From: Leucoraja erinacea
Taxonomy: Eukaryota
DNA: 64,000 nt
Reading direction: 5' to 3'
NCBI RefSeq assembly: GCF_028641065.1
Contig: NW_026576484.1
Location: 1 to 64,000, forward strand
Below the pieces are notes generated by a model. That model did not search any database and was not told where the DNA came from. It saw only the letters and a program-made list of their open reading frames with translations. Each line of letters begins with the position of its first letter. Position 1 is the first letter of the stretch. The position numbers and the translations under genes are program-made. This document shows, piece after piece, positions 4,006 through 57,491 of this stretch.

Positions 4006-4305
4006 CGAAGCCTGATATCTCGCTGACCCTGGATGCCGGGGTAAAAGGCGCAGAGACGCGGAGCCTGACTTGTGTGGCCGCCGGATTCTTCCCGAGGGAG
4101 CTGAACATGTCCTGGGCTGTCGTGGGCCAGTTGTCCTATGAAACAGAAGCGGGGCCGCTGAGGGAGAATGAGGATGGAAGCTTCAACGTGAGCTCCCGGC
4201 TGCGGCTCACCGGCCCTCGGCTAGAGGCGGGCATGGTCGTCACCTGCCTGGTTCAGCACCTCACGGGGACGGGCTCGGTGAGCAAACGTTTCCCTCCCAT
4301 CCCAA
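4006..4305 (+). CDS. VJ-C1 IgSF receptor exon 3, C1-set domain
   Basis: Acceptor tttacgcag|, donor CCAA|GTAAGT; phase 1-1, 300 nt; AKPDISL...LTCVAAGFFPRELNMSW...NEDGSFNVSSRL...VTCLVQH matches C1 hallmarks (CxxxGFxP, W, NxDGxF, CxVxH). Confidence 0.95.
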
Positions 4306-10200: not shown

Positions 10201-10845
10201 AATTCCCTCTCTCTCTCCATCCCTCCCCATCCAAGTCACAACAGCTTTTTGTTCTCACCTAGCTACAGCTAACAATGACCTGTTTCCTTTATCTCTTGAC
10301 ATCATTGCCGGTATCTCTTGTTTCCCTTTCCCTTAACTTTCAGTCTGAAGAAGTATTGACTCAAAACGTCACCCATTCCTTCTCTCCACAGATGCTGCCT
10401 GTCCCACTGAGTTACTTCAGCATTTTGTTTCTATCTTCGATTTGAACCAGTAGTTCCTTCCTATGAAATTCTGCTCCTCTCTATCGTCTAATTTGCTCCC
10501 TGTTCTCACGATCGGTCCTTGACCTGTTTCTTTAACTTTGTTTCCCTTTACACATTTTTAGATTAGATTAGATTAGATCCTTTATTTGTCATTCAGAACG
10601 AAATGTCATTGCCTGCAGCCATACATGTAATAATAAACAACAAAACACACAATAAACACAAATTAACATCCACCACAGTGAGTTCACCAGGCACTTCCTC
10701 ACTGTGATGGAGGCAAAAATCTTAGGGTTACTGTCTCTTCCCTCCTCTTCTCCCTCTGCGCTGAGGCGATATGCTGTTACCCCACCGGGCGATGGTAAGT
10801 CAGTCCCGCGGCTCACCGAGCTCCGCGAACGGGACGGTTCACGCT

Positions 10846-11705
10846 CCAAGAGTCAAGAGTCAATTCAAGAGTCAATTTAATTGTCATTTGGACCCCTAGA
10901 GGTCCATACGAAATGCCGTTTCTGCAGCCATACATTACACACAAATAGACCCAGACACAACATAATTACAATTTTACATAAACATCCATCACATAGCTGT
11001 GATGGAAGGCCAAAAAAAACTTATCTCTCCACTGCACTCTCCCCCCCCCCCCGATGTCAGAGTCAAAGTCAAAGCCCCCGGCTAGCGATGGCGATTGTCC
11101 CGCGGCCATTGAAGCCACGCCGGGTGGTGCGAGGTCGCACACCGGGTCTTGGTGTTGGAGCCCCCGGTGTGCACTCGTAAAGTCCCGCAGCCGTTCCAGC
11201 CGCGCGGGGCAGTGGTGTAAGGCCCCGCTCCAGGAGCTCTTCAACCCCGCAACTCGGGCGGGAGAATTTGCCGTTGTAGGAGCCCCGAAAAGCGGTCTCT
11301 CTCCAGGGATCCGCCGGCTCCCGGCGCCGCTGTCCGCAGACCCGCAGCAGCAGCCCCCGACTCAGCAGCAGCAGCAGCAGCAGCAGCAACCCGCTCCAGA
11401 CTCGGCCAGCTCCGCGACGGCGACGGTGAGTAGCACCTGAGTCCCCGGTTTCCTCCTGTTGGAGGCCGCTCCTCGTTACGGCCTCAACGACAACGGAGCC
11501 CGACGAGAAAAGGTCGGGTCTCCAGTGCAGGGAGAGATTTAAAAAGTTTCCCCCCCCCCCCCCCCCCACCCCACCCCCCACCCCCCCACACACACACCCC
11601 AACATAAAATAACAAAAACTACATTAAAACACAGACAGAAAATAATAAAAACGCGGACAGACTGCAGAGGCCGCTGCTGGCCAGAGCCGCGCCGCCTACC
11701 GGATC
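10846..11705 (-). mobile_element. Non-autonomous GC-rich retroelement, copy 1, with (TCTTGA)n tail and (CTG)n
   Basis: Colinear with 16623-17528 and 28649-29443; 3' end tgacaattaaa plus tandem tail; related partial copies at 10560-10845, 11705-12340, 31550-32205. Confidence 0.8.
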
Positions 11706-13084
11706 ACCGGAGGGCGGCCCGGGGTGGTCGAAGCTGCCGCCCTCCAGTCCAGCGGATGCAGTTGTTGCCATGGGAGCTCCGGAAAACAGGCACTGCCTGT
11801 GACCTGCGAATTCCCGACGATTTCGTCCACTGGCCCGCGGCCGAGCCCCAGATTCAGGTCGCCGCCGCCAGAACGCCGCCTCAGCTATCGGAGCGCCGTC
11901 CCAGCCCTGCGCCGGGCCGCCCTCACTGGAGCGCCATCTCAGCCCCGAGCGTCGAGTTGTGCCGCTGCCACCGGAGCATCTCAGCCCCGCGCCGGGTCGC
12001 CCTCATGGGAGCGTCGAGTCACTGGAGCGCCCGAACGCGGCCACAGCTCGAAGACGGCCAGCCTAGCTCCGGAGCCTCGAGGTCGGTCGCAGGTTGGAGG
12101 CCGCCAGCTCCGCCATTAGGCCTCAGCGCAGACGGAGGCAGAGAAGGGGGATATGACAAGAAAAAGTCGCATTCCCCCGAAGGGAGAGACAGAAAGCCCT
12201 GTTTTAGGCCCCCCCCACCCCACACACATAACACAACCTAATAACCAAAAATGTAACTAAACAAGACAAAAAAAAACAACACAAAAAAGTAAAAACAGAT
12301 GGACTGCAGGAGAGCCGTTCAACAGCGCCGCCACTTCCGGAGCCTGACCTGCTGCATATTTCCACCATTTTCTTTCTTTTCGTTAATTTTTTTTTTTAAA
12401 CCTTCTTGTTGTAGATTGGTTACTTTACTTACTAACCAATGTAGTGCTTTATTATTATATGGCAGGAGACAGCATTTATCCTCTGTGACTTGGGAGATCT
12501 TGGTTTCATAGTAAATGATTTACTGAAGCCAGTAAGCAGATATAGCAAATCAATGTGAATGCTATATAGTGGAAATGTCAAGGACTAGAGGACATAGCTT
12601 CAAGGTGAGAGAGGCAAAGTTTAAAGGAGATGTACGGGACAAGTTGTTTTAAACAGAGGGTGGTGAGTGCCTGGAACATGTTGCTAGTAGTGGTGGTGGA
12701 GGCTGATATGATAGTGGCATTTAAGAGGTGTTTAGATAGGCATGTGGATGTGCAGGGAATGGAGGGATATGATTCACGTGCAGGCAGAGAAGATTGGTTT
12801 AACTTGGCTCCATGTTTGTCACAGACATTGCAAATTGAAGGGCCTGTACTATGTTCTAAACTCTATGAGGTTGGCAGATTCCGTACACAACACATTCCAA
12901 GACAGACCACTACATAAAGGATTCACTGTTGATTTTGCATAATGATTTTTCCTTGTTGTTTGGTTTATAAGGGGCAAAGTTTAACAAAGATGTGCACGCT
13001 GCCAGGGGTGGTAGTGGAGGCAGATATGATAGTGGTGTTTAAGAGGCTTTTAGGAAGCAGTTACGCAGCTGATTTTCCAATATA

Positions 13085-14751: not shown

Positions 14752-14853
14752 GATCCTCCAAGTATTATTTCATTCGACTGAGTCTGATCCTAATAGTACC
14801 AATATGGGTCTTGATTGTGTATCATTATCACAATAAATTGAAGAAAGGAAAAG
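14752..14853 (+). CDS. VJ-C1 IgSF receptor exon 4, transmembrane segment with Arg (RSSKYYFIRLSLILIVPIWVLIVYHYHNKLKKGK)
   Basis: Acceptor attttcaag|, donor AAG|GTAATG; phase 1-1, open in the C1 frame; hydrophobic helix followed by a basic stop-transfer cluster; lies in non-repetitive sequence. Confidence 0.85.
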
Positions 14854-15476: not shown

Positions 15477-15544
15477 AATCATCTGTCCATGACACAACTG
15501 TTGATATTCAAAGCATGAGAAACCGAAATAACTCAGTAAATGAG
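15477..15544 (+). CDS. VJ-C1 IgSF receptor exon 5, cytoplasmic (ESSVHDTTVDIQSMRNRNNSVNE)
   Basis: Acceptor tttttatag|, consensus donor GAG|GTGAGT; phase 1-0; open frame. Confidence 0.78.
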
Positions 15545-16545: not shown

Positions 16546-16622
16546 CACAAGACATTCTGCGGCACGGTGGCGCAGTGGGAGTGTTGCTGCCTCATAGCTG
16601 AGTCGCACGTTACGAGTTAACA

Positions 16623-17528
16623 CAAGAGTCAAGAGTCAAGAGTCAAGAGTCAATTTAATTGTCATTTGGACCCCTGGGGGTCCAAACGAAATGCCGTTTC
16701 TGCAGCCATACATTACACACAAATAGACCCCAGACAAAACATAATTACATTTAACATAAACATCCATCACATAACTGTGATGGAAGGCCAAAAACACTTA
16801 TCTCTCCACTGCACTCTCCCCCCCCCGATGTCACAGTCAAAGTCAAAGCCCCCGGCTGGCGATGGCGATTGTCCCGCGGCCATTAAAGCCACGCCGGGTG
16901 GTGCGAGGTCGCACACCGGGTCTTGGTGTTGGAGCCCCCGGTGTGCGCTCGCAAAGTCCCGCAGCCGTTCCAGCCGCGCGGGGCAATGGTGTTAGGCCCC
17001 GCTCCAGGAGCTCTTCGACCCCGCAACACGGGCGGGAGAATTCGCCGTTGCAGCAGCCCGAAAAGCGGTCTCCCTCCAGGGAGCCGCGCGGGGTCGTCCG
17101 AGCCATCCGCAGACCCGCAGTAGCAGCCTCCGACTCAGCAGCAGCAGCGGCATCGGCAGCAGCAGCAGCAGCAGCAGCAGCGGCAGCGGCAGCGCTCCTC
17201 CACCGCTCCACCCGCTCCGGTCTCGGCCAGCTCCGCGACGGCAACGGTGAGTCGGCACCAGAGTCCCCGGCTTCTTCCCGTTGGAGGCCGCTCCTCGTTG
17301 CGGCCTCAACGACACCTGAGACCCGACGAGAAAAGGTCGGGTCTCCAGTGCAGGGAGAGATTCAAAAGTTCCCCCCCCCCCCCCCCACCCCACCCCCCAC
17401 CCCCACCCCCCCACACACACACCCCAACATAAAATAACAAACACTACACAGAAACACAGACAAAAAATAACAAAAACGCGGACAGGCTGCAGAGGCCGCT
17501 GCTGGCCAGAGCCGCGCCGCCTACCGGA
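16623..17528 (-). mobile_element. Non-autonomous GC-rich retroelement, copy 2
   Basis: Colinear with 10846-11705; (caagagt)n tail. Confidence 0.8.
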
Positions 17529-17850
17529 ACCCCGAGGTACCCCGAGTTAAAACTCGTGGTAATAACGTACGATTAACGTACCAAACTCGTAGACGTAACT
17601 TAGAGACTCGTGGCGCTAACGGCAGGTACTCGAGAAACTTGTCAACTCTTGCAAAAAATCAAACATGTTTAAAATTTTCCACGAGTCAATTTTACCCTTG
17701 TGGTTAAGAATTGAAACATTTAAACTTGTAAGAACATAGTGGCCCGTGCGTTTACCTTAGTGTATCATGAGTCTACCGTGGGAACGCTTTAACTCAGCGA
17801 GCAGGCAGCAGCAGATTGTCGCTCCCTTCAGTTTCCCAGCGACAATCACC

Positions 17851-18886
17851 TGCCATAACGCGAGAAAGATCATGCACTGTTGTAGGTCTCCTTTGCACGT
17901 CGGTGTTTCTGTCTTTCTCCACTCATTGGTGGCCCTATCTGTCACCACCCCCAGCTTCCCGGCCATGTGTGTGACCCCTTCCCTCCCCTCTCCAGCTCCC
18001 CGCCCATTGCACCAGCGTGGGGGCTTTGCACTGTCTTCACGTCGGCGATGCCAGCAGGTCAGTGCCAGTCGCCCCGGGGCAGTTGCTCCCTTCAGTTTCC
18101 CAGGGGGTCGAGATAGGACTGGAATTGGGAGGGAAAGGTGGGGGGGGTGGGGGGGTTAGGTGAGCAGGAGAGTGGAGTTGTTTGCAGTTGCAGAGTAAGG
18201 GGGCAAGGGCGGTACAGTTCCCAGTCTCAGCTCCTGCCCAGGGGGGTGGCCGGAGACGTCAGGACCAACGAGACACCGACCCCCAGGCCCACGAGGCCCA
18301 CTGCAAGCACGGAGAACCCAGAGACCCATAGCCAACAGCAACTCCAGCCCAGTCCCGCTCCAACTCCAATGGAACCCGCTCCCCGTAGGGTCAGAAGCTG
18401 ATGGTATGCAAGGTACGTGTGAGGGGGCACCCGTGGGCGAACTGGGTCAGAAGCCCATCTGATGGTATGCAAGGTACGTCTTGTTCTTGGGGTGGCGGCC
18501 ACTCTCCTGGTCCTGACGTCTCAGGCCACCACCCTGGGGAGGAGCTGAGACGGAACTGTACTGCCCTTGCCCCCCCCCCACCATTCCCTCCCAACTCCAG
18601 TCCCGTCCCGACCCCCTGGGAAACTGAAGGGAGCGACTGCCCCGGGGCGACTAGCAGTGACCTGCTGGCATCGCCGACGTGAAGACAGTTCAAATCCCCC
18701 TCGCCAGTGCAATGGGCGGGGAGCTGGAGAGAGGAGGTAAAGGGTCACACACATGGCCGGGAAGCAGAGGGATGTAGGTGGGGGTGGTGACAGATAGGGC
18801 CAACAATGAGTGGAGAAAGACAGAAACACCGACGTGCAAAGGAGACCTACAACAAACAGTGCATGATCTCTCTCGCGTTATGGCAG
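17851..18886. repeat. About 1-kb imperfect inverted repeat (foldback)
   Basis: 17851-18235 is the reverse complement of about 18500-18886. Confidence 0.8.
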
Positions 18887-21670: not shown

Positions 21671-22784
21671 GGTGATGTTGATAATGATATCAGTGAAACA
21701 GATATTGCCCACAAGTGTCACATGCCCATCGATCACTGACTAGTCCATGGACACACACACACCCACACTTTAGCTTTTGCCCATTTGGTGTTTACTAATC
21801 AAATTCGTTACTGATTTCACATGACTTTTCAATAAAAATCAGGAACAGAGCCTCATTATAATTTATAAATTATAAATTATAAATCAGGAACAGAATACCT
21901 CATTAGATTCAGCTAAAAATAAAATGACCATAAGATCATCAGACATAGTAGCAGAATTAGGTCATTCAGCCCATCGAGTCTGCTCTGACATTCACTCATG
22001 GCTGATCTAATTTTCCCTCTCAACCAATACTCCTGCCTTCTCACCGTAATCTTTGACACCCGTACTAATCAAGAATCTATCATTCTCCGCTTTAAAATGA
22101 TCCAATGTCTTGGCCTCTACCACTGACTGCGCTAATAAATTCCACAGATTCACCACCATCTGGCTAAATAAATCCTCTCATCTCCGTTCTATTGTTATCC
22201 AAAATGTTCTAAAGTTCTAAAATTCCTCCGCTTCTCCAATTCTAAAATGAAGAAAATATCTTTCTAACCATAAGTTGGAATGTCTACAGAGACGATTTAC
22301 GATGATGTTGACAGGACTTCAGGGAGAGGTTGAGCAGGCTTGGACTCCCTGGAGCACAGGAGGATAAGGGGCGATCTTATTGGGGTGTATAAAATCATAA
22401 TGGGAATAGGTGGGTGAATGCACTGAGTTATTATAGCCAAAGGGAATTGAGAAATAGAAGGCATATGTTTAATGTGAGAGGGAAAAACTTGAGGGGCAAC
22501 TTTATCACTCAGAGGGTGGTGGGTATATGGAACGAGCCGCCGGAGGACGTAGTTGGGGCAGGGACTACAACACCATTTAAAAGATATTTGGACAGGTACA
22601 TGGACACAAAAGGTTTAGAGGGACTAGTGCCAACCGAGGGCAAATGGGACTATCTTAGATGGGGCATCTTGGTCGGCGTAGACGAGTTGGGCCGATGGGT
22701 CTGTTTCCGTGCTCTATAACTATGATATCAACTCTATAACACTAATATTTGCAAGTGGTTCTTATTGTTATTTTTGTGTTGCAG

Positions 22785-22820
22785 GATAATGTTTCAATAA
22801 ACTATGAAAATCTGCATTAG
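22785..22820 (+). CDS. VJ-C1 IgSF receptor terminal exon (DNVSINYENLH*), ITIM INYENL
   Basis: Strong acceptor tttttgtgttgcag|; phase 0 matches exon 5; I-x-Y-x-x-L motif; TAG at 22818-22820. Confidence 0.78.
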   Translation, partial: DNVSINYENLH

Positions 22821-23194
22821 GCGCCTGTTTATTGCAAGGAGGGACAGCAAAGACAGGAATTGAGATGGACCGAGCAATCCCAAGAAACAGAATATGCCGT
22901 CTTAAAGGTCAAAGATAACAATTCTCTCTTTTTTGCATCTTTCTTCTTTTTCTTCATTCTTTTCGTTTTTCTCTTTTCCTCGATTTATGTATAAATTTAT
23001 TCTTTTCGATTTATGTATCAATTTATAAGATGTTAAAAATGAAGCTGTACGGAAATTGTATAACTCTCATGCTGATTGCTTTATTCTTGTACAATAGCTC
23101 CTAATAAAATAAACATATTAAAAAAAAGATTAAAATAATTTATGAAGAACCGGTAACTTACTCCACAGTAATACATTGTCCCTCTTCAACATAA
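22821..23194 (+). pseudogene. Vestigial cytoplasmic tail beyond the stop (APVYCKE...ETEYAVLKVKD / KIIYEEPVTYSTVIHCPSST*)
   Basis: Frame stays open after the TAG; removing the insertion at 22917-23131 joins both parts in frame to TAA 23192-23194. Confidence 0.7.
22917..23128 (+). mobile_element. 5'-truncated poly(A) retroelement 3' end (L1/Tx1-like) inserted in the receptor last exon
   Basis: T-rich 3'UTR-like body, AATAAA x2 at 23103-23113, A-tail; imperfect TSD aaagataa/aaagattaa; architecture resembles the L1 3' end at 9790-10108. Confidence 0.65.
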
Positions 23195-23669
23195 CCGCAA
23201 ACTGATACTTATCATACAACCACACACTCATCTCTCAAACAACATATGCAAAATATAAAAAAACAGAATCTAGCGGATGTGGCATGGCTGTCGAAACTTA
23301 CTTCTCTATTCAATTACTTTCCTTGAGCTCAAAACCAATTGATCTTTGTGACTCGCCATAAATCGCCTTCTGAGAGTTCCAAATGTACTTAGAATAAAGG
23401 GGAGGCATTTAGATTGAGGTGAGAAAAAACGTTTTCACCCAGAGAGTTGTGAATTTGTGGAATTCCCTGCCACAGAGGGCAGTGGAGGCCAAGTCACTGG
23501 ATGGATTTAAGAGAGAGTTAGATAGAGCTCTAGGGGCTAGTGGAATCAAGGGATATGGGGAGAAGGCAGGCACGGGTTATTGATTGAGGATGATCAGCCA
23601 TGATCACAATAGTTGGCGGTGCTGGCTCGAAGGGCCGAATGGCCTCCTCCTGCACCTATTTTGAAAAGC

Positions 23670-24010
23670 TTTGTTTTGCATGCTATCCAATCAAATCAGA
23701 TACTACTATACATAAATACAATTAACCCAAACTCAAGTACAATAGGTGGAGCAAAGTGGAAGATACAAAGTGCAGAATTTAATTCTCAGCACTGTAGCAC
23801 ACCGGTTCCACAGACAAAGTCCAATGTCCCTCAATGGGGTAGAGGTGAATCGGACAGTGATTCGGAAGCCTGATAACAGAGGGGAAGAAGCTGTTGCTGA
23901 ATCTGTTGGTGCGCACTTTCAAGCTTCTGTATCTTCTGCCTGATGAGAGCAGGGAGAAAAGTGAATGATCAGGTTGGGACAAGTCTTTGATTATGTTGGC
24001 TGCCAATCCG
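23670..24010 (-). mobile_element. Rex1/Babar LINE 3' fragment
   Basis: HSLFSLLSSGRRYRSLKVRTNRFSNSFFPSVIRL. Confidence 0.8.
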
Positions 24011-28448: not shown

Positions 28449-28648
28449 CTTAATTAGGTCAACATGGACTCTGTTGTTTCTCTTAATTGGGTCAGACGTT
28501 GATGCATCAACATCTAAAAGTCTTCATGGCTATTATTGTTTCCTTTGATCATATCAAGAGGATGGGTAAAGTGTGCTAGAAACATTATGCAAAAATTCTC
28601 TGTTATCCACCTGCACATAATCCATACTTGTCCATTCCCTGTGTATCC

Positions 28649-29443
28649 CGGTGGGCGGCGCGACTCTGGTCAGCAGCGGCCTCTGCAGTCTGTCCGCGTT
28701 TTATTATTTTCTGTCTGTGTTTTTATGTAGTGTTTGTTATTTTTTGTTGGGGTGTGTGTGTGGGGGGGGCGGGGGTGGGGTGGGAGGGAGGGGGAAACTT
28801 TTTAAAATCTCTCCCTGCACGGGAGACCCGACCGTTTCTCGTCGGGTTTCCGTTGTCGTTGGGGCCGCAACGAGGAGCGGCCTCCAACAGGAAGAGACCG
28901 GGGACTCTGGTGCTACGACTCACCGTCGCCGTCGCGGGGTTGGCCGAGTCCGGAGCGGGTGGAGTGGTGGAGGAGCGCTGCTGCTGCTGCTGCGGCCCGA
29001 CCGGACAGTCGGAGGCTTCAACGGCAGGTCTGTGGACGGCGGCACCGGGAGCCCGCGGGTCCCTGGAGGGAGACCGCTTTTCAGGGCTCTCGCAACGGCG
29101 ACTTCCCCCGCCCGAGTTGCGGGGTTGAAGAGCTCCTGGAGCGGGGCCTAACATCACCGCCCGGCGCGGCTTTAATGGCCGCGGGACAATCGCCATCGCC
29201 AGCCGGGGGCTTTGACTTTGACTTTGACATCGGGGGGGGGGGGGGGGGGGGGGGGGAGAGTGCAGTGGAAAGATAAGTTTATTTGGCCTTCCATCACAGC
29301 GATGTGATGGATGTTTATGTTTATGTAAATTATGTTGTGTCTTGGGTCTATGTGTTTGTAATGTATGGCTGCAGAAACGGCATTTCGTTTGGACCTCAAG
29401 GGGTCCAAATGACAATTAAATGTATCTTGTATCTTGTTGTATC
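28649..29443 (+). mobile_element. Non-autonomous GC-rich retroelement, copy 3
   Basis: Reverse complement of the 10846-11705 family; (tcttgta)n tail; TSD tgtatcc. Confidence 0.8.
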
Positions 29444-29969
29444 TTGTATCCACGTGCCTGTCTAAATGTTTCTTCAACGCCGTTATTGTATCTGCCTTTG
29501 CAGTGTGTTCCAGGTACTCACTACCCTCTGTGTAAAAACACTTTCCTGCACATCACATTGCCCCTCTCACCTTAAAGCTTTGCCCTCTAGTATTTGATGT
29601 TTGCAATCTATGCTTCCCATAACTTTATTAATTATAACCTAAATATCAATAACAGAACACAGATGATGTCTGTGCTAAACTTAATGCCAAGGTAAACTAA
29701 TCTCCTCTGCCTGCATGTGATCCATAACCCAACTCTCACTGCATATCCATGTGCCTATCTAATTACCAGTATTGCCATCAATTAAATGCCATTATCGTAC
29801 CTTATTCCACCAACACCCCGGCAGCTTGTTCCACGCACCCACCCTGGCAGCTTGTTCCACGCACCCCCCCACACCTCGCTTAAACTTTGTTCAATGATAC
29901 TTTATTATTACATATACCATAGTACAATGAAATTCCCTTTGGGCATTCGGTTCAGTAAAAATCTTACTA

Positions 29970-31498
29970 CAGGTGCACAACCTTTATATCCGAAATTCCA
30001 AATAATGAAAAACTCCGAATAGCGGACATTTGTTCGGTCCTTGAAGAAAGGGCCTTGAAGACATTCACCGAGGGCGTCCCGCAGAGGTGACAGCGGAACC
30101 TCCGGTCGGTCCTCGAAGAAAGGGGAACTAAATCCCCATTCATAAAAGAGAAGGTGAGGGTATATTGCGCGGGAGGGTTAATAATTGACAATCTGCTGCT
30201 GCCTGCCCGCTGAGTTAAAAAGTTCCCACGGTAGACTCACGATACACAGTGTATCGTGAGTCTTGCGTGGAAACTTTTTAACTCAGCGGGCAGGCAGCAG
30301 CAGATTGTCTCTCCCTTCAGTTTCACCCCACCTACACCCCTCTGCTTCCCGGCCATGTGTGTGACCCCTTCCCTCCCCTCTCCAGCTCCCCGCCCATTTG
30401 CACGGATGCGGAGGCTTTGCACTGTCTTCACTGCCAGCAGGTCAGTGCCAGTCACCGGAGACGTCAGAACCAACGGGACACCGACCCCCAGGCCCACTGC
30501 AAGCACGGAGATCCCAGAGACCCACAGCCAGCAGCAGCCCAGCCCCGTTCCAACTCCAGAGGGAAACTGGAATCTGGCCGGAGACGTCAGGACCACCAGA
30601 AGCCGCTCCCCGATGGGCCGCTACGGCGACAAGTGGCAGTTTGCCCTTAGCCCGAGCTGCGCCCCCTCATCGGGACACCGACCCCCAGGCCCACTGCAAG
30701 CACGGAGATCCCAGATCAGCAACTCCAGCCCAGCCCCGCTCCAACTCCAGAGGAACACGGGGCAGAAGCTGATGGTGTGCAAGGTACATCTTGTTCTTGG
30801 GGTGGCGCATTTTAAGTTGCGAAACGGTGATATTTTTCCCCATACGAACCAACAGTGTTTTTGCTGCCGATATGGGGACTAAATCACTGCAAACGCAACA
30901 TTCCAATTGATCGCGTTCCAGAAAAACCCATTCGCAAGCTGATTTAAATGGCCATTAATTTACAGGTATTAAACATTAAATTCCTTCCATTTGGCCTATA
31001 AACCCATGACAATGAGATTTAAAAATTATGTGATATTTGGAATTCTTGTGTGAATGTTATTTGGACATTTAGGCTATTTAAAAATGTTAATCTATTCTTA
31101 AGAAATGGATAGATGTTTAGATTTAGTAATTGAATTTTGTAATTAGCTACAATTAGGTAACTAACTAATTATATGCTTTATCTTCAAGTCATCCAATTGT
31201 TTCATATTTGTTTCAGAATGCTTCAATCCACAATAACTGAACATTTCTTTCAGTTCTCTTAATTTTTAAGAAAGCTATGGGCTTTTGACTGTACTTGATC
31301 ATAGCTTTTGTGTTAAGTTAATGGAAAAGCAATAGGGTACAAGATGCTAAATTCTGAGTATGAAAATGGCCATGACCTTTTTAATACTGAAGATATGAAA
31401 GTGAATTAGGTGTCAAATTAAACTTCTTTTTATGCTTTATCTAATGGGATAAATTGCAGACTTGATTTTTTAAATCTCAAAATTTTGTAACATTCCTA
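29970..31498 (+). mobile_element. Composite DNA-transposon remnant: Tc1/mariner(pogo)-like 5' end, GC-rich middle, 3' half of the 7-bp-TSD family
   Basis: TA|CAGGTGCACAACC start; 30237-30800 shared with 17757-18500; 30900-31498 aligns to 27880-28448. Confidence 0.6.
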
Positions 31499-47541: not shown

Positions 47542-48486
47542 CCAAAGATGATCTACAAAGGGAGATTTACAAAATGTTTTACAAGGTGGTGGCAGCAAGT
47601 AAAAAAAAAGTTGAAGACAAGCCGGTCGTGGTACAGTGGCTTGGCACAGTATACTTTACCCTTTTAAGTTGCTCTTACCACTCAATACAAATGATGGTAT
47701 GGAAGGAGGGGATGGGAGGGGAGGGGAGGGGAGTGTGGGGTTGGAGGGGAGTGGGGTGTGTGTGTGGGCAGGGGGGTGTAGGAGGGGGAGAGCATGGTTT
47801 GGGGGGGGGCGGGCGGTGGGGGAGGGTGTGTGTGGTGGTGGGGGGGGGGGTGGGGTGGTAGGGGAGGTGTGTATGTGTTGCATCTCTTGTTGCATTCTGC
47901 AGCTGGGGAAGGGGATGGCTTCAGACGGGGGCTGTTGGGAGCAGGTTGGGGAGGGGGAGCGTTCTGCATCCAGGGGAGGGGATGCATCATAGGATGCTTC
48001 CCCCCCCATCCCCGGACCCCGACAGCCCCCTCCTGAAGCCGTCCCTCTCCCAAACTGCAGGACGCTCTCCACCACCGGCCCCCACCTGAAGCCGTCCCAT
48101 CACCAAGTGAACAACTCTTAAAATATAAAAACAATTTAAATTTATTCAGTCCATTCTTTCTTGTTGCATCTCTTGTTGCATTCTGCAGCTGGCGGAGCAG
48201 GGTGGCTTCAGNNNNNNNNNNNNNNNNNNNNNNNNNNNNNNNNNNNNNNNNNNNNNNNNNNNNNNNNNNNNNNNNNNNNNNNNNNNNNNNNNNNNNNNNN
48301 NNNNNNNNNNNNNNNNNNNNNNNNNNNNNNNNNNNNNNNNNNNNNNNNNNNNNNNNNNNNNNNNNNNNNNNNNNNNNNNNNNNNNNNNNNNNNNNNNNNN
48401 NNNNNNNNNNNNNNNNNNNNNNNNNNNNNNNNNNNNCGCGGGGGCCCGAGCGAGCCCGGAGAGACCTGAGGACCAAAGATCCTATA

Positions 48487-57050: not shown

Positions 57051-57491
57051 NNNNNNNNNNNNNNNNNNNNNNNNNNNNNNNNNNNNNNNNNNNNNNNNNN
57101 NNNNNNNNNNNNNNNNNNNNNNNNNNNNNNNNNNNNNNNNNNNNNNNNNNNNNNNNNNNNNNNNNNNNNNNNNNNNNNNNNNNNNNNNNNNNNNNNNNNN
57201 NNNNNCCTTTATGGTTCATGCACATCATCTTACAAGACAAATTATTTAATAGTGATTATTTAAATCAAAGTTGCTTCTGATCCATGAGAATAAACTTAAT
57301 TATCTCTAACTTGCCTCTCACACACAGACACACATTCATATAAATATATAAAATATGTATACGTTAAATTTAATTTTGTGCAGTGTGTGTTAAAGCAATA
57401 CAAGGGAAACTGCACAATACAATGCAAGGGAAACTACGCAAAGGAGGGGGCTGTTCCCGCTACAAGATACTCGAGGATCTTTACTTTGGAT

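Follow-up and report, generated by a model that had tools for sequence, protein, structure and literature searches.

A probable relic of an inhibitory tail behind the stop codon of a SIRP-like receptor gene in skates

Paired receptors of mammals and a SIRP-like gene of sharks, rays and skates

In mammals, SIRP-alpha is an inhibitory receptor, and SIRP-beta combines a lysine in its transmembrane helix (TM) with a short tail. In mammalian SIRPs as in the elasmobranch family described below, a V-set domain that ends J-like precedes one or more C1-set domains, and the tails of the shark and ray proteins, with their four ITIM/ITSM-like tyrosines, carry motifs that presumably resemble those of the human SIRP-alpha tail. 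The number of C1 domains varies, with two in mammalian SIRPs as well as in Mobula and Hypanus, and one in the skate, in sharks and in Pristis.

For the short-tailed, activating KIR of hominoids, NK-cell receptors that derive from long-tailed inhibitory KIR, a two-step route has been reconstructed that comprises a TM charge and a stop codon inside the membrane-proximal ITIM (Abi-Rached & Parham 2005, PMC2213150). Both signature changes are also found in the skate gene analyzed here, and like in short-tailed KIR (PMC2213150), formerly ITIM-coding sequence appears to be left in the 3'UTR. The two systems differ in their domains, which are D0-D1-D2 in KIR and V-C1 of SIRP-like type in the skate, in the position of the charge, which is a Lys in the middle of the TM in KIR and an Arg near its outer end in the skate, and in the host, which here is a cartilaginous fish and not a hominoid. 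Unlike in the case of KIR, no inhibitory sister gene was seen, as a skate paralogue is absent from protein searches that cannot prove absence, and it may therefore be that the conversion struck a single-copy gene and not one of two paired genes. An inhibitory-to-activating conversion with ITIM relics is already known, but the SIRP-like family of sharks and rays is so far undescribed in the searchable literature, which yielded no work on SIRP of elasmobranchs; shark DAP12 or FcR-gamma likewise did not turn up among the papers listed. Tyrosine motifs are judged in the following by the consensus (S/I/V/L)xYxx(I/V/L) for ITIMs and TxYxx(V/I) for ITSMs (PMC12151841).

The window, i.e. the whole analyzed stretch of 64,000 nt from Leucoraja erinacea (contig NW_026576484.1), contains on its + strand a complete six-exon gene for a V-set/C1-set receptor, which was identified by tblastn with orthologue proteins and by a leader scan. 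The exons, which were compared with the proteins one by one and not as a joined spliced model, are the following:

145-193, + strand: leader exon with ATG at 145, encoding MSSFAKLIYTLCLFLP plus 1 nt; donor CAG/gtaagt
976-1311, + strand: V-set Ig exon with the J-like end FTGNGTTLHIQ, phase 1 to 1
4006-4305, + strand: C1-set Ig exon, AG/GT confirmed
14752-14853, + strand: TM exon, (R)SSKYYFIRLSLILIVPIWVLIVYHYHNKLKKGK
15477-15544, + strand: cyt1 exon, (E)SSVHDTTVDIQSMRNRNNSVNE, ending in phase 0; found by tblastn, with AG/GT
22785-22820, + strand: last coding exon piece, DNVSINYENLH followed by TAG (22818-22820)

AG/GT borders and coherent phases were found at all six exons, the 10 splice sites are canonical, the acceptor ahead of 22785 is strong (tattgttatttttgtgttgcag directly precedes the exon), and the model sums up to 891 nt, i.e. 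296 codons plus TAG, so that the corrected skate gene model encodes 296 aa and ends at 22820. Identity to orthologues is 45-66% in every coding exon; the leader matches that of Mobula at 10/16 positions, and the V and C1 exons are 66% and 61% identical to the Pristis orthologue, with Pfam E-values of 2.9e-7 (V-set) and 9.7e-13 (C1-set), respectively. Together with the leader and TM exons, these Pfam matches describe a type I membrane protein in which a V-set is followed by a C1-set domain, i.e. the SIRP-like V-C1 architecture, and among the non-antibody structures in the PDB, those of SIRP-alpha (2wng) and SIRP-gamma (4i2x) are closest to the Scyliorhinus orthologue. This supports the comparison with SIRPa that the first-pass annotation had drawn for the ancestral tail.

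A protein search with the V exon returned a small family, whose members are named tyrosine-protein phosphatase non-receptor type substrate 1-like (SHPS-1-like) or signal-regulatory protein beta-1-like in RefSeq. It comprises proteins of the sharks Scyliorhinus (P0003), Stegostoma (P0065), Hemiscyllium (P0064), Heptranchias (P0063) and Heterodontus (P0066/67) and of the batoids Mobula (P0062), Narcine (P0005), Pristis (P0001), Hypanus (P0002) and Hemitrygon, and thus constitutes a SIRP-like shark and ray family with a conserved four-motif tail. The orthologues other than that of Hemitrygon have the same exon plan as the skate gene and a tail exon that is collinear with 22785-23242, but in contrast to the skate they have either Tyr at the column of the TAG or short-tail isoforms (Pristis X2, Hypanus X2), and they lack both the insert described below and the TM Arg. 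In the two X2 isoforms, cyt1 is followed by unrelated ends (ARFPCLQ and ...GFLQMTSCCYMVA), which suggests that other batoids may obtain ITIM-less products via alternative 3' exons and not via a stop codon. Two family members of 270 aa, from Mobula hypostoma (P0068) and Hemitrygon akajei (P0070), have another TM (LIPFI(L/S)R(A/T)VII...) that includes an Arg, and a short tail free of tyrosines; these are activating-type partners or isoforms, and paired signalling is thus present in the family outside the skates. Neither this stingray-type TM exon nor other tail exons or other copies of the tail exon were found in the window.

The region downstream of the stop codon

Behind the TAG, the following elements were assigned:

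22821-22916, + strand: first piece of the putative tail relic, APVYCKEGQQRQELRWTEQSQETEYAVLKVKD, 32 open codons after the TAG in frame 0
22917-23131, + strand: retro-insert of 215 nt with poly(A), two overlapping AATAAA (23103-23113) and an A-run to 23127
23132-23194, + strand: second piece, KIIYEEPVTYSTVIHCPSST plus TAA, in another frame, with a YEEP motif and a VxYSxV ITIM
23195-23242, + strand: third piece, PQTDTYHTTTHSSLKQ, recognized by tblastn and alignment as a likely relic of QTANYxxT(I/T)YASLK(Q/K)

The letters, frames, repeats and AATAAA signals that had been reported in the first-pass annotation were all confirmed in the sequence, including the finding that an excision of 22917-23131 joins a single frame, as expected from 215 mod 3 = 2. 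The orthologue tails carry LHYA[S/P]V, TEYA[V/I/A]L, [F/I]YEE, VxYSxV, ANY and T[I/T]YASL, and their alignment to the window is collinear in the order DNVSINYENLH[TAG]APVYCKEG..QQRQELRWTEQSQETEYAVLKVKD[insert]KIIYEEPVTYSTVIHCPSST[TAA]PQTDTYHTTTHSSLKQ. Nine shark and ray tails match the pieces on both sides of the insert over ~70 residues. When the tails were compared with the 64 kb of the window by tblastn, E-values were 8e-11 and 2e-7 for Mobula and 1e-9 and 1e-4 for Scyliorhinus, whose tail ends with ...NVSLSSETLHYAPVHVSNPRRWKQKRESERPEQEQETEYAVLKVKDKNNLSYEEPVQYSAVCTSNRRQTANYDTTIYASLKQ. One further tblastn pairing, of KVKDNNSLFF with KVKDKNNLSY, was rejected, as it is due to a chance match of the first bases of the insert. 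The first piece is 59-72% identical to the Mobula and shark tails and holds (T/K/S)EYA(V/I/A)L, which is invariant in the elasmobranch family. As the pieces altogether are 53-72% identical to functional tails, and thus no worse conserved than the coding exons, the substitutional decay is slight. On these grounds, 22821-23242 is almost certainly the decaying remnant of the ITIM-bearing cytoplasmic tail of a skate orthologue, and the earlier proposal that a multi-tyrosine inhibitory tail once continued behind the stop is borne out by the tail motifs of the orthologues and by tblastn.

Three details of that proposal need to be revised. The relic had been thought to end with the TAA at 23194, but homology continues to about 23242 (PQTDTYHTTTHSSLKQ versus RQTANYDTTIYASLKQ in a shark). 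The stop codon had been suggested to originate from CAG, but the column of the TAG is occupied by Tyr and not Gln in 9/9 long-tail orthologues of the protein alignment, and this Tyr belongs to the membrane-proximal ITIM L-(H/Q)-Y-A-(S/P/F)-V (ETLHYA[S/P]V); as judged from the protein alignment alone, it was thus the codon of the ITIM tyrosine that turned into a stop, by TAY (Tyr) > TAG. Moreover, TEYAVL had been likened to the TEYASI/TEYATI motifs of SIRPa/PD-1, but with T at -2 and L at +3 it strictly fits neither consensus (PMC12151841), and like TIYASL, which also has L at +3, it can only be termed ITSM-like. In contrast, LHYAxV and VxYSxV agree with the ITIM consensus, and the assignment of VTYSTV as ITIM is therefore correct.

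The most distal motif of the relic, T(I/T)YASL in the orthologues, now reads TTHSSL, with His in place of Tyr. Distal losses, regarded as independent of those in the skate, are also seen in Mobula birostris (P0062), where Y1-Y3 are kept but the distal tyrosines are gone (VCNFTV; ANCHTTTSFSL). As the HTTT run is common to Mobula and the skate relic, some of the distal decay may be older than the separation of skates and stingrays.

The insert is flanked by AAAGATAA (22911-22918) and AAAGATTAA (23125-23133), which are AAAGAT(A/T)AA repeats. In three DNA runs, the depth over 22927-23154 is 200-570x that of the single-copy flanks and peaks in the 3' part, which points to an abundant repeat family with a 5'-truncation profile like that of LINE/SINE tails. 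A second copy was not found within the window. The orthologue proteins outside the skates run through the insertion site without interruption (KVKDK/..YEE), and the element thus shows what is expected of a LINE-mediated insertion. With its poly(A), its AATAAA, the A-rich target-site duplication and the depth, the 215-bp piece is confirmed as a genuine retro-insertion, as had been suggested before.

The truncation in other skates

Three DNA runs from other skates (organisms B, C and D, with single-copy depths of ~22, ~69 and ~24) were represented by their Logan contigs, which were aligned to 22300-24000. At 22818-22820, none of them differs from the TAG, though nearby full-share differences are listed, and contigs from all three sets bridge both junctions of the insert with at least 33 letters per side, while a joint that skips the insert was not reported among the contigs of these sets. 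As both the TAG and the insert are common to the three other skate sets, the truncation is old. A rough neutral yardstick is provided by the 3' flank (23155-23390), where 17-18 of 236 positions (~7%) in C and D deviate from the window. The expectation that orthologues have a sense codon in place of the TAG, and no insert, therefore holds for sharks and rays, whose proteins have Tyr at this column and lack the insert, but not for the skate relatives, which share both. It had further been anticipated that an ancient stop and insert together with a lack of downstream conservation would speak against a relic. Here the outcome is mixed: the TAG and the insert are indeed ancient among skates, but the VTYSTV segment is conserved in comparison with the coding tails of sharks and rays, and the interpretation as fossil tail thus stands.

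Other positions differ among the skates:

22796-22803: intact in the window; net 5-nt loss in C, whose product ends DNVS(A/D)-TGA and lacks INYENL
23192-23194: TAA in the window; AAA in B; AGA in C and D (Arg, as in sharks)
23198: CAA in the window; TAA in C only

The TAA at 23192-23194 is thus a derived variant that is private to this assembly (AGA > AAA > TAA), and its consideration as an old truncation was rejected, since it is absent from B, C and D. The last 11 codons of the gene are not conserved among skates, as evident from the 5-nt loss in C. An AATAAA lies within the last coding exon at 22796-22801 (tcAATAAAc), and the loss in C falls exactly there.

In the old reading frame, six synonymous differences face eight that are non-synonymous or nonsense, a ratio that does not depart significantly from neutrality (binomial P 0.17). 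The stretches are not uniform, as 22821-22916 has only 2/96 differences among skates, both of them non-synonymous, versus 7-11% further downstream (Poisson P ~0.03), and 4/5 differences in 23132-23191 are synonymous. The low divergence of 22821-22916 may be due to chance or to a constrained element of the 3'UTR.

Switched receptor or pseudogene

In the skate protein, in-frame ITIM/ITSM tyrosines as required for an inhibitory receptor are largely missing, since the first ITIM Tyr has given way to the TAG, and the remaining tail motifs follow only after this stop. The sole in-frame motif is INYENL, an ITIM by pattern, which is still present in the window as well as in B and D despite the cut at the first ITIM, but is lost in organism C. 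At the same time, the TM of the skate reads YYFIRLSL (YYFIRLSLILIV, 14752-14853), whereas the orthologues have YYF(A/S/V/G)LL(S/T/G)L. The Arg, encoded in the 14773-14775 region (ATT CGA), is positioned close to the outer end of the helix, at a site where 10/10 orthologues of the same TM type have Leu, and it provides the positive TM charge that is typical for activating paired receptors of the SIRP-beta or short-tailed KIR type. A new TM Arg together with a truncated tail fits a switch from an inhibitory to an activating receptor.

How could such a switch have taken place? In a skate ancestor, the Tyr codon of the membrane-proximal ITIM (LHY-A-S/P-V) changed to TAG. The reading frame now closes after 11 codons of the last exon, and the four ITIM/ITSM-like motifs have all come to lie in the 3'UTR. 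This formerly coding 3'UTR then drifted: it took up the poly(A) retro-insert that is common to other skates, the Tyr was lost from the most distal motif, and different nonsense mutations arose in different skate lineages. The TM helix has gained the Arg that is seen in no orthologue, and the rest of the gene is intact. A receptor that inhibited by recruitment of SHP would thereby have turned into a tail-less receptor that depends on an adaptor, comparable to SIRP-beta or short-tailed KIR. It is our inference that a truncated protein is produced and that it uses an ITAM adaptor for signalling. The intact 891-nt ORF and the 10 splice sites, which persisted despite an old TAG, argue for a functional switch rather than for a plain death of the gene, and we therefore lean towards the view that the gene encodes a still-functional switched receptor, which is adaptor-dependent or at least tail-less. 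The instability of the last 11 codons has to be counted against this view.

What else could account for these observations? The main alternative, which we consider less likely than a switch, is a young unitary pseudogene, in which the Tyr > stop change destroyed the sole useful, inhibitory product, with upstream exons that in slowly evolving elasmobranch genomes simply have not yet been hit. The stop is indeed premature relative to the orthologues, and in one oligo-dT RNA run (X11, tissue unstated) the unique exon and UTR parts had zero depth, with reads that were derived from repeats only. Annotated proteins likewise offer no skate member of the family: none was returned by the V-exon search in 1.8 billion representative proteins, which cannot show absence, and there was none among the 37 candidates of a tail-only search with Mobula residues 335-466, which is uninformative on absence; the missing skate protein could mean that the gene has been annotated as a pseudogene or has remained unannotated. 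The unstable end of the coding region in organism C also agrees with decay, and as even the relic pieces have barely diverged, the intactness of the upstream exons can only be weak evidence of constraint. The 296-codon ORF and the splice sites are nevertheless unhit, in contrast to two disabling hits in the ~207 nt of the relic; if this lesion rate is applied upstream, the probability of zero hits is ~(207/1095)^3, i.e. ~0.007, a crude estimate from two events. It also speaks against a pseudogene that the TAG is old enough to be common to sets with ~7% neutral divergence, and that an Arg at an otherwise all-Leu TM position is the expected companion of a functional switch (PMC2213150).

It is also conceivable that alternative processing continues to produce the tail, and thus an inhibitory isoform beside the short one. 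The AG of the TAG (22819-22820) could serve as phase 0 acceptor, and a cryptic intron from GT 22908-9 to AG 23127-8 could excise the insert without a frame shift (...AVLK/IKIIYEEPVTYSTV...). All of these sites exist and keep the frame, and the low divergence of 22821-22916 as well as the predominantly synonymous differences in 23132-23191 would be in line with a tail that is still translated. However, both acceptors have no pyrimidine tract, one of them even follows an A-run, the two differences in 22821-22916 change the amino acid, the would-be ORF has acquired independent stops (TAA 23192 in the window, TAA 23198 in organism C), the overall 6:8 ratio of synonymous to non-synonymous differences does not deviate from neutrality, and no reads fell on the unique parts in the RNA run, so that we regard such a rescue as very unlikely. 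Finally, ITIM-like patterns are short, and 32 stop-free codons are expected ~20% of the time, so that an ordinary 3'UTR might in principle have an open frame with tyrosine motifs by chance; the significant, collinear alignment of two pieces to nine orthologue tails refutes this idea for all practical purposes.

If the gene indeed encodes a switched receptor, it would be a clean and datable example from cartilaginous fish of an inhibitory immune receptor that lost its brake. The Tyr > stop change in the first ITIM and the new TM Arg mirror the route that has been reconstructed for primate KIR, and this parallel suggests that the route may be general for ITIM receptors across jawed vertebrates. 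It might even be that the skates (Rajiformes) converted an apparently single-copy inhibitory receptor to an activating type with TM Arg tens of Myr ago and kept it, with a lineage-wide loss of the checkpoint in place of the evolution of a receptor pair. This extension is speculative and rather unlikely to hold in full, but if true, no documented switch by first-ITIM stop and TM charge would branch off more deeply, and it would have come about by conversion and not by duplication. The locus also indicates that 3'UTRs can keep readable fossils of signalling motifs, which can be useful for dating such switches.

The surroundings of the exons are rich in repeats. Large repeated elements lie inside the large introns of the gene, represented by GC-rich (~53%) blocks at 10600-12240, 16620-18700 and 28500-30900 with near-identical long ORF patterns, twice in + orientation and once inverted, and N stretches are present in the window at 48212-48436 and 57051-57205. 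The terminal exon is flanked by LINE-type fragments (ORF ...FFTQRVV..WN.LP...) at 22393-22716 and 23380-23700, whose depth in the DNA runs reaches up to 10^5-10^7.
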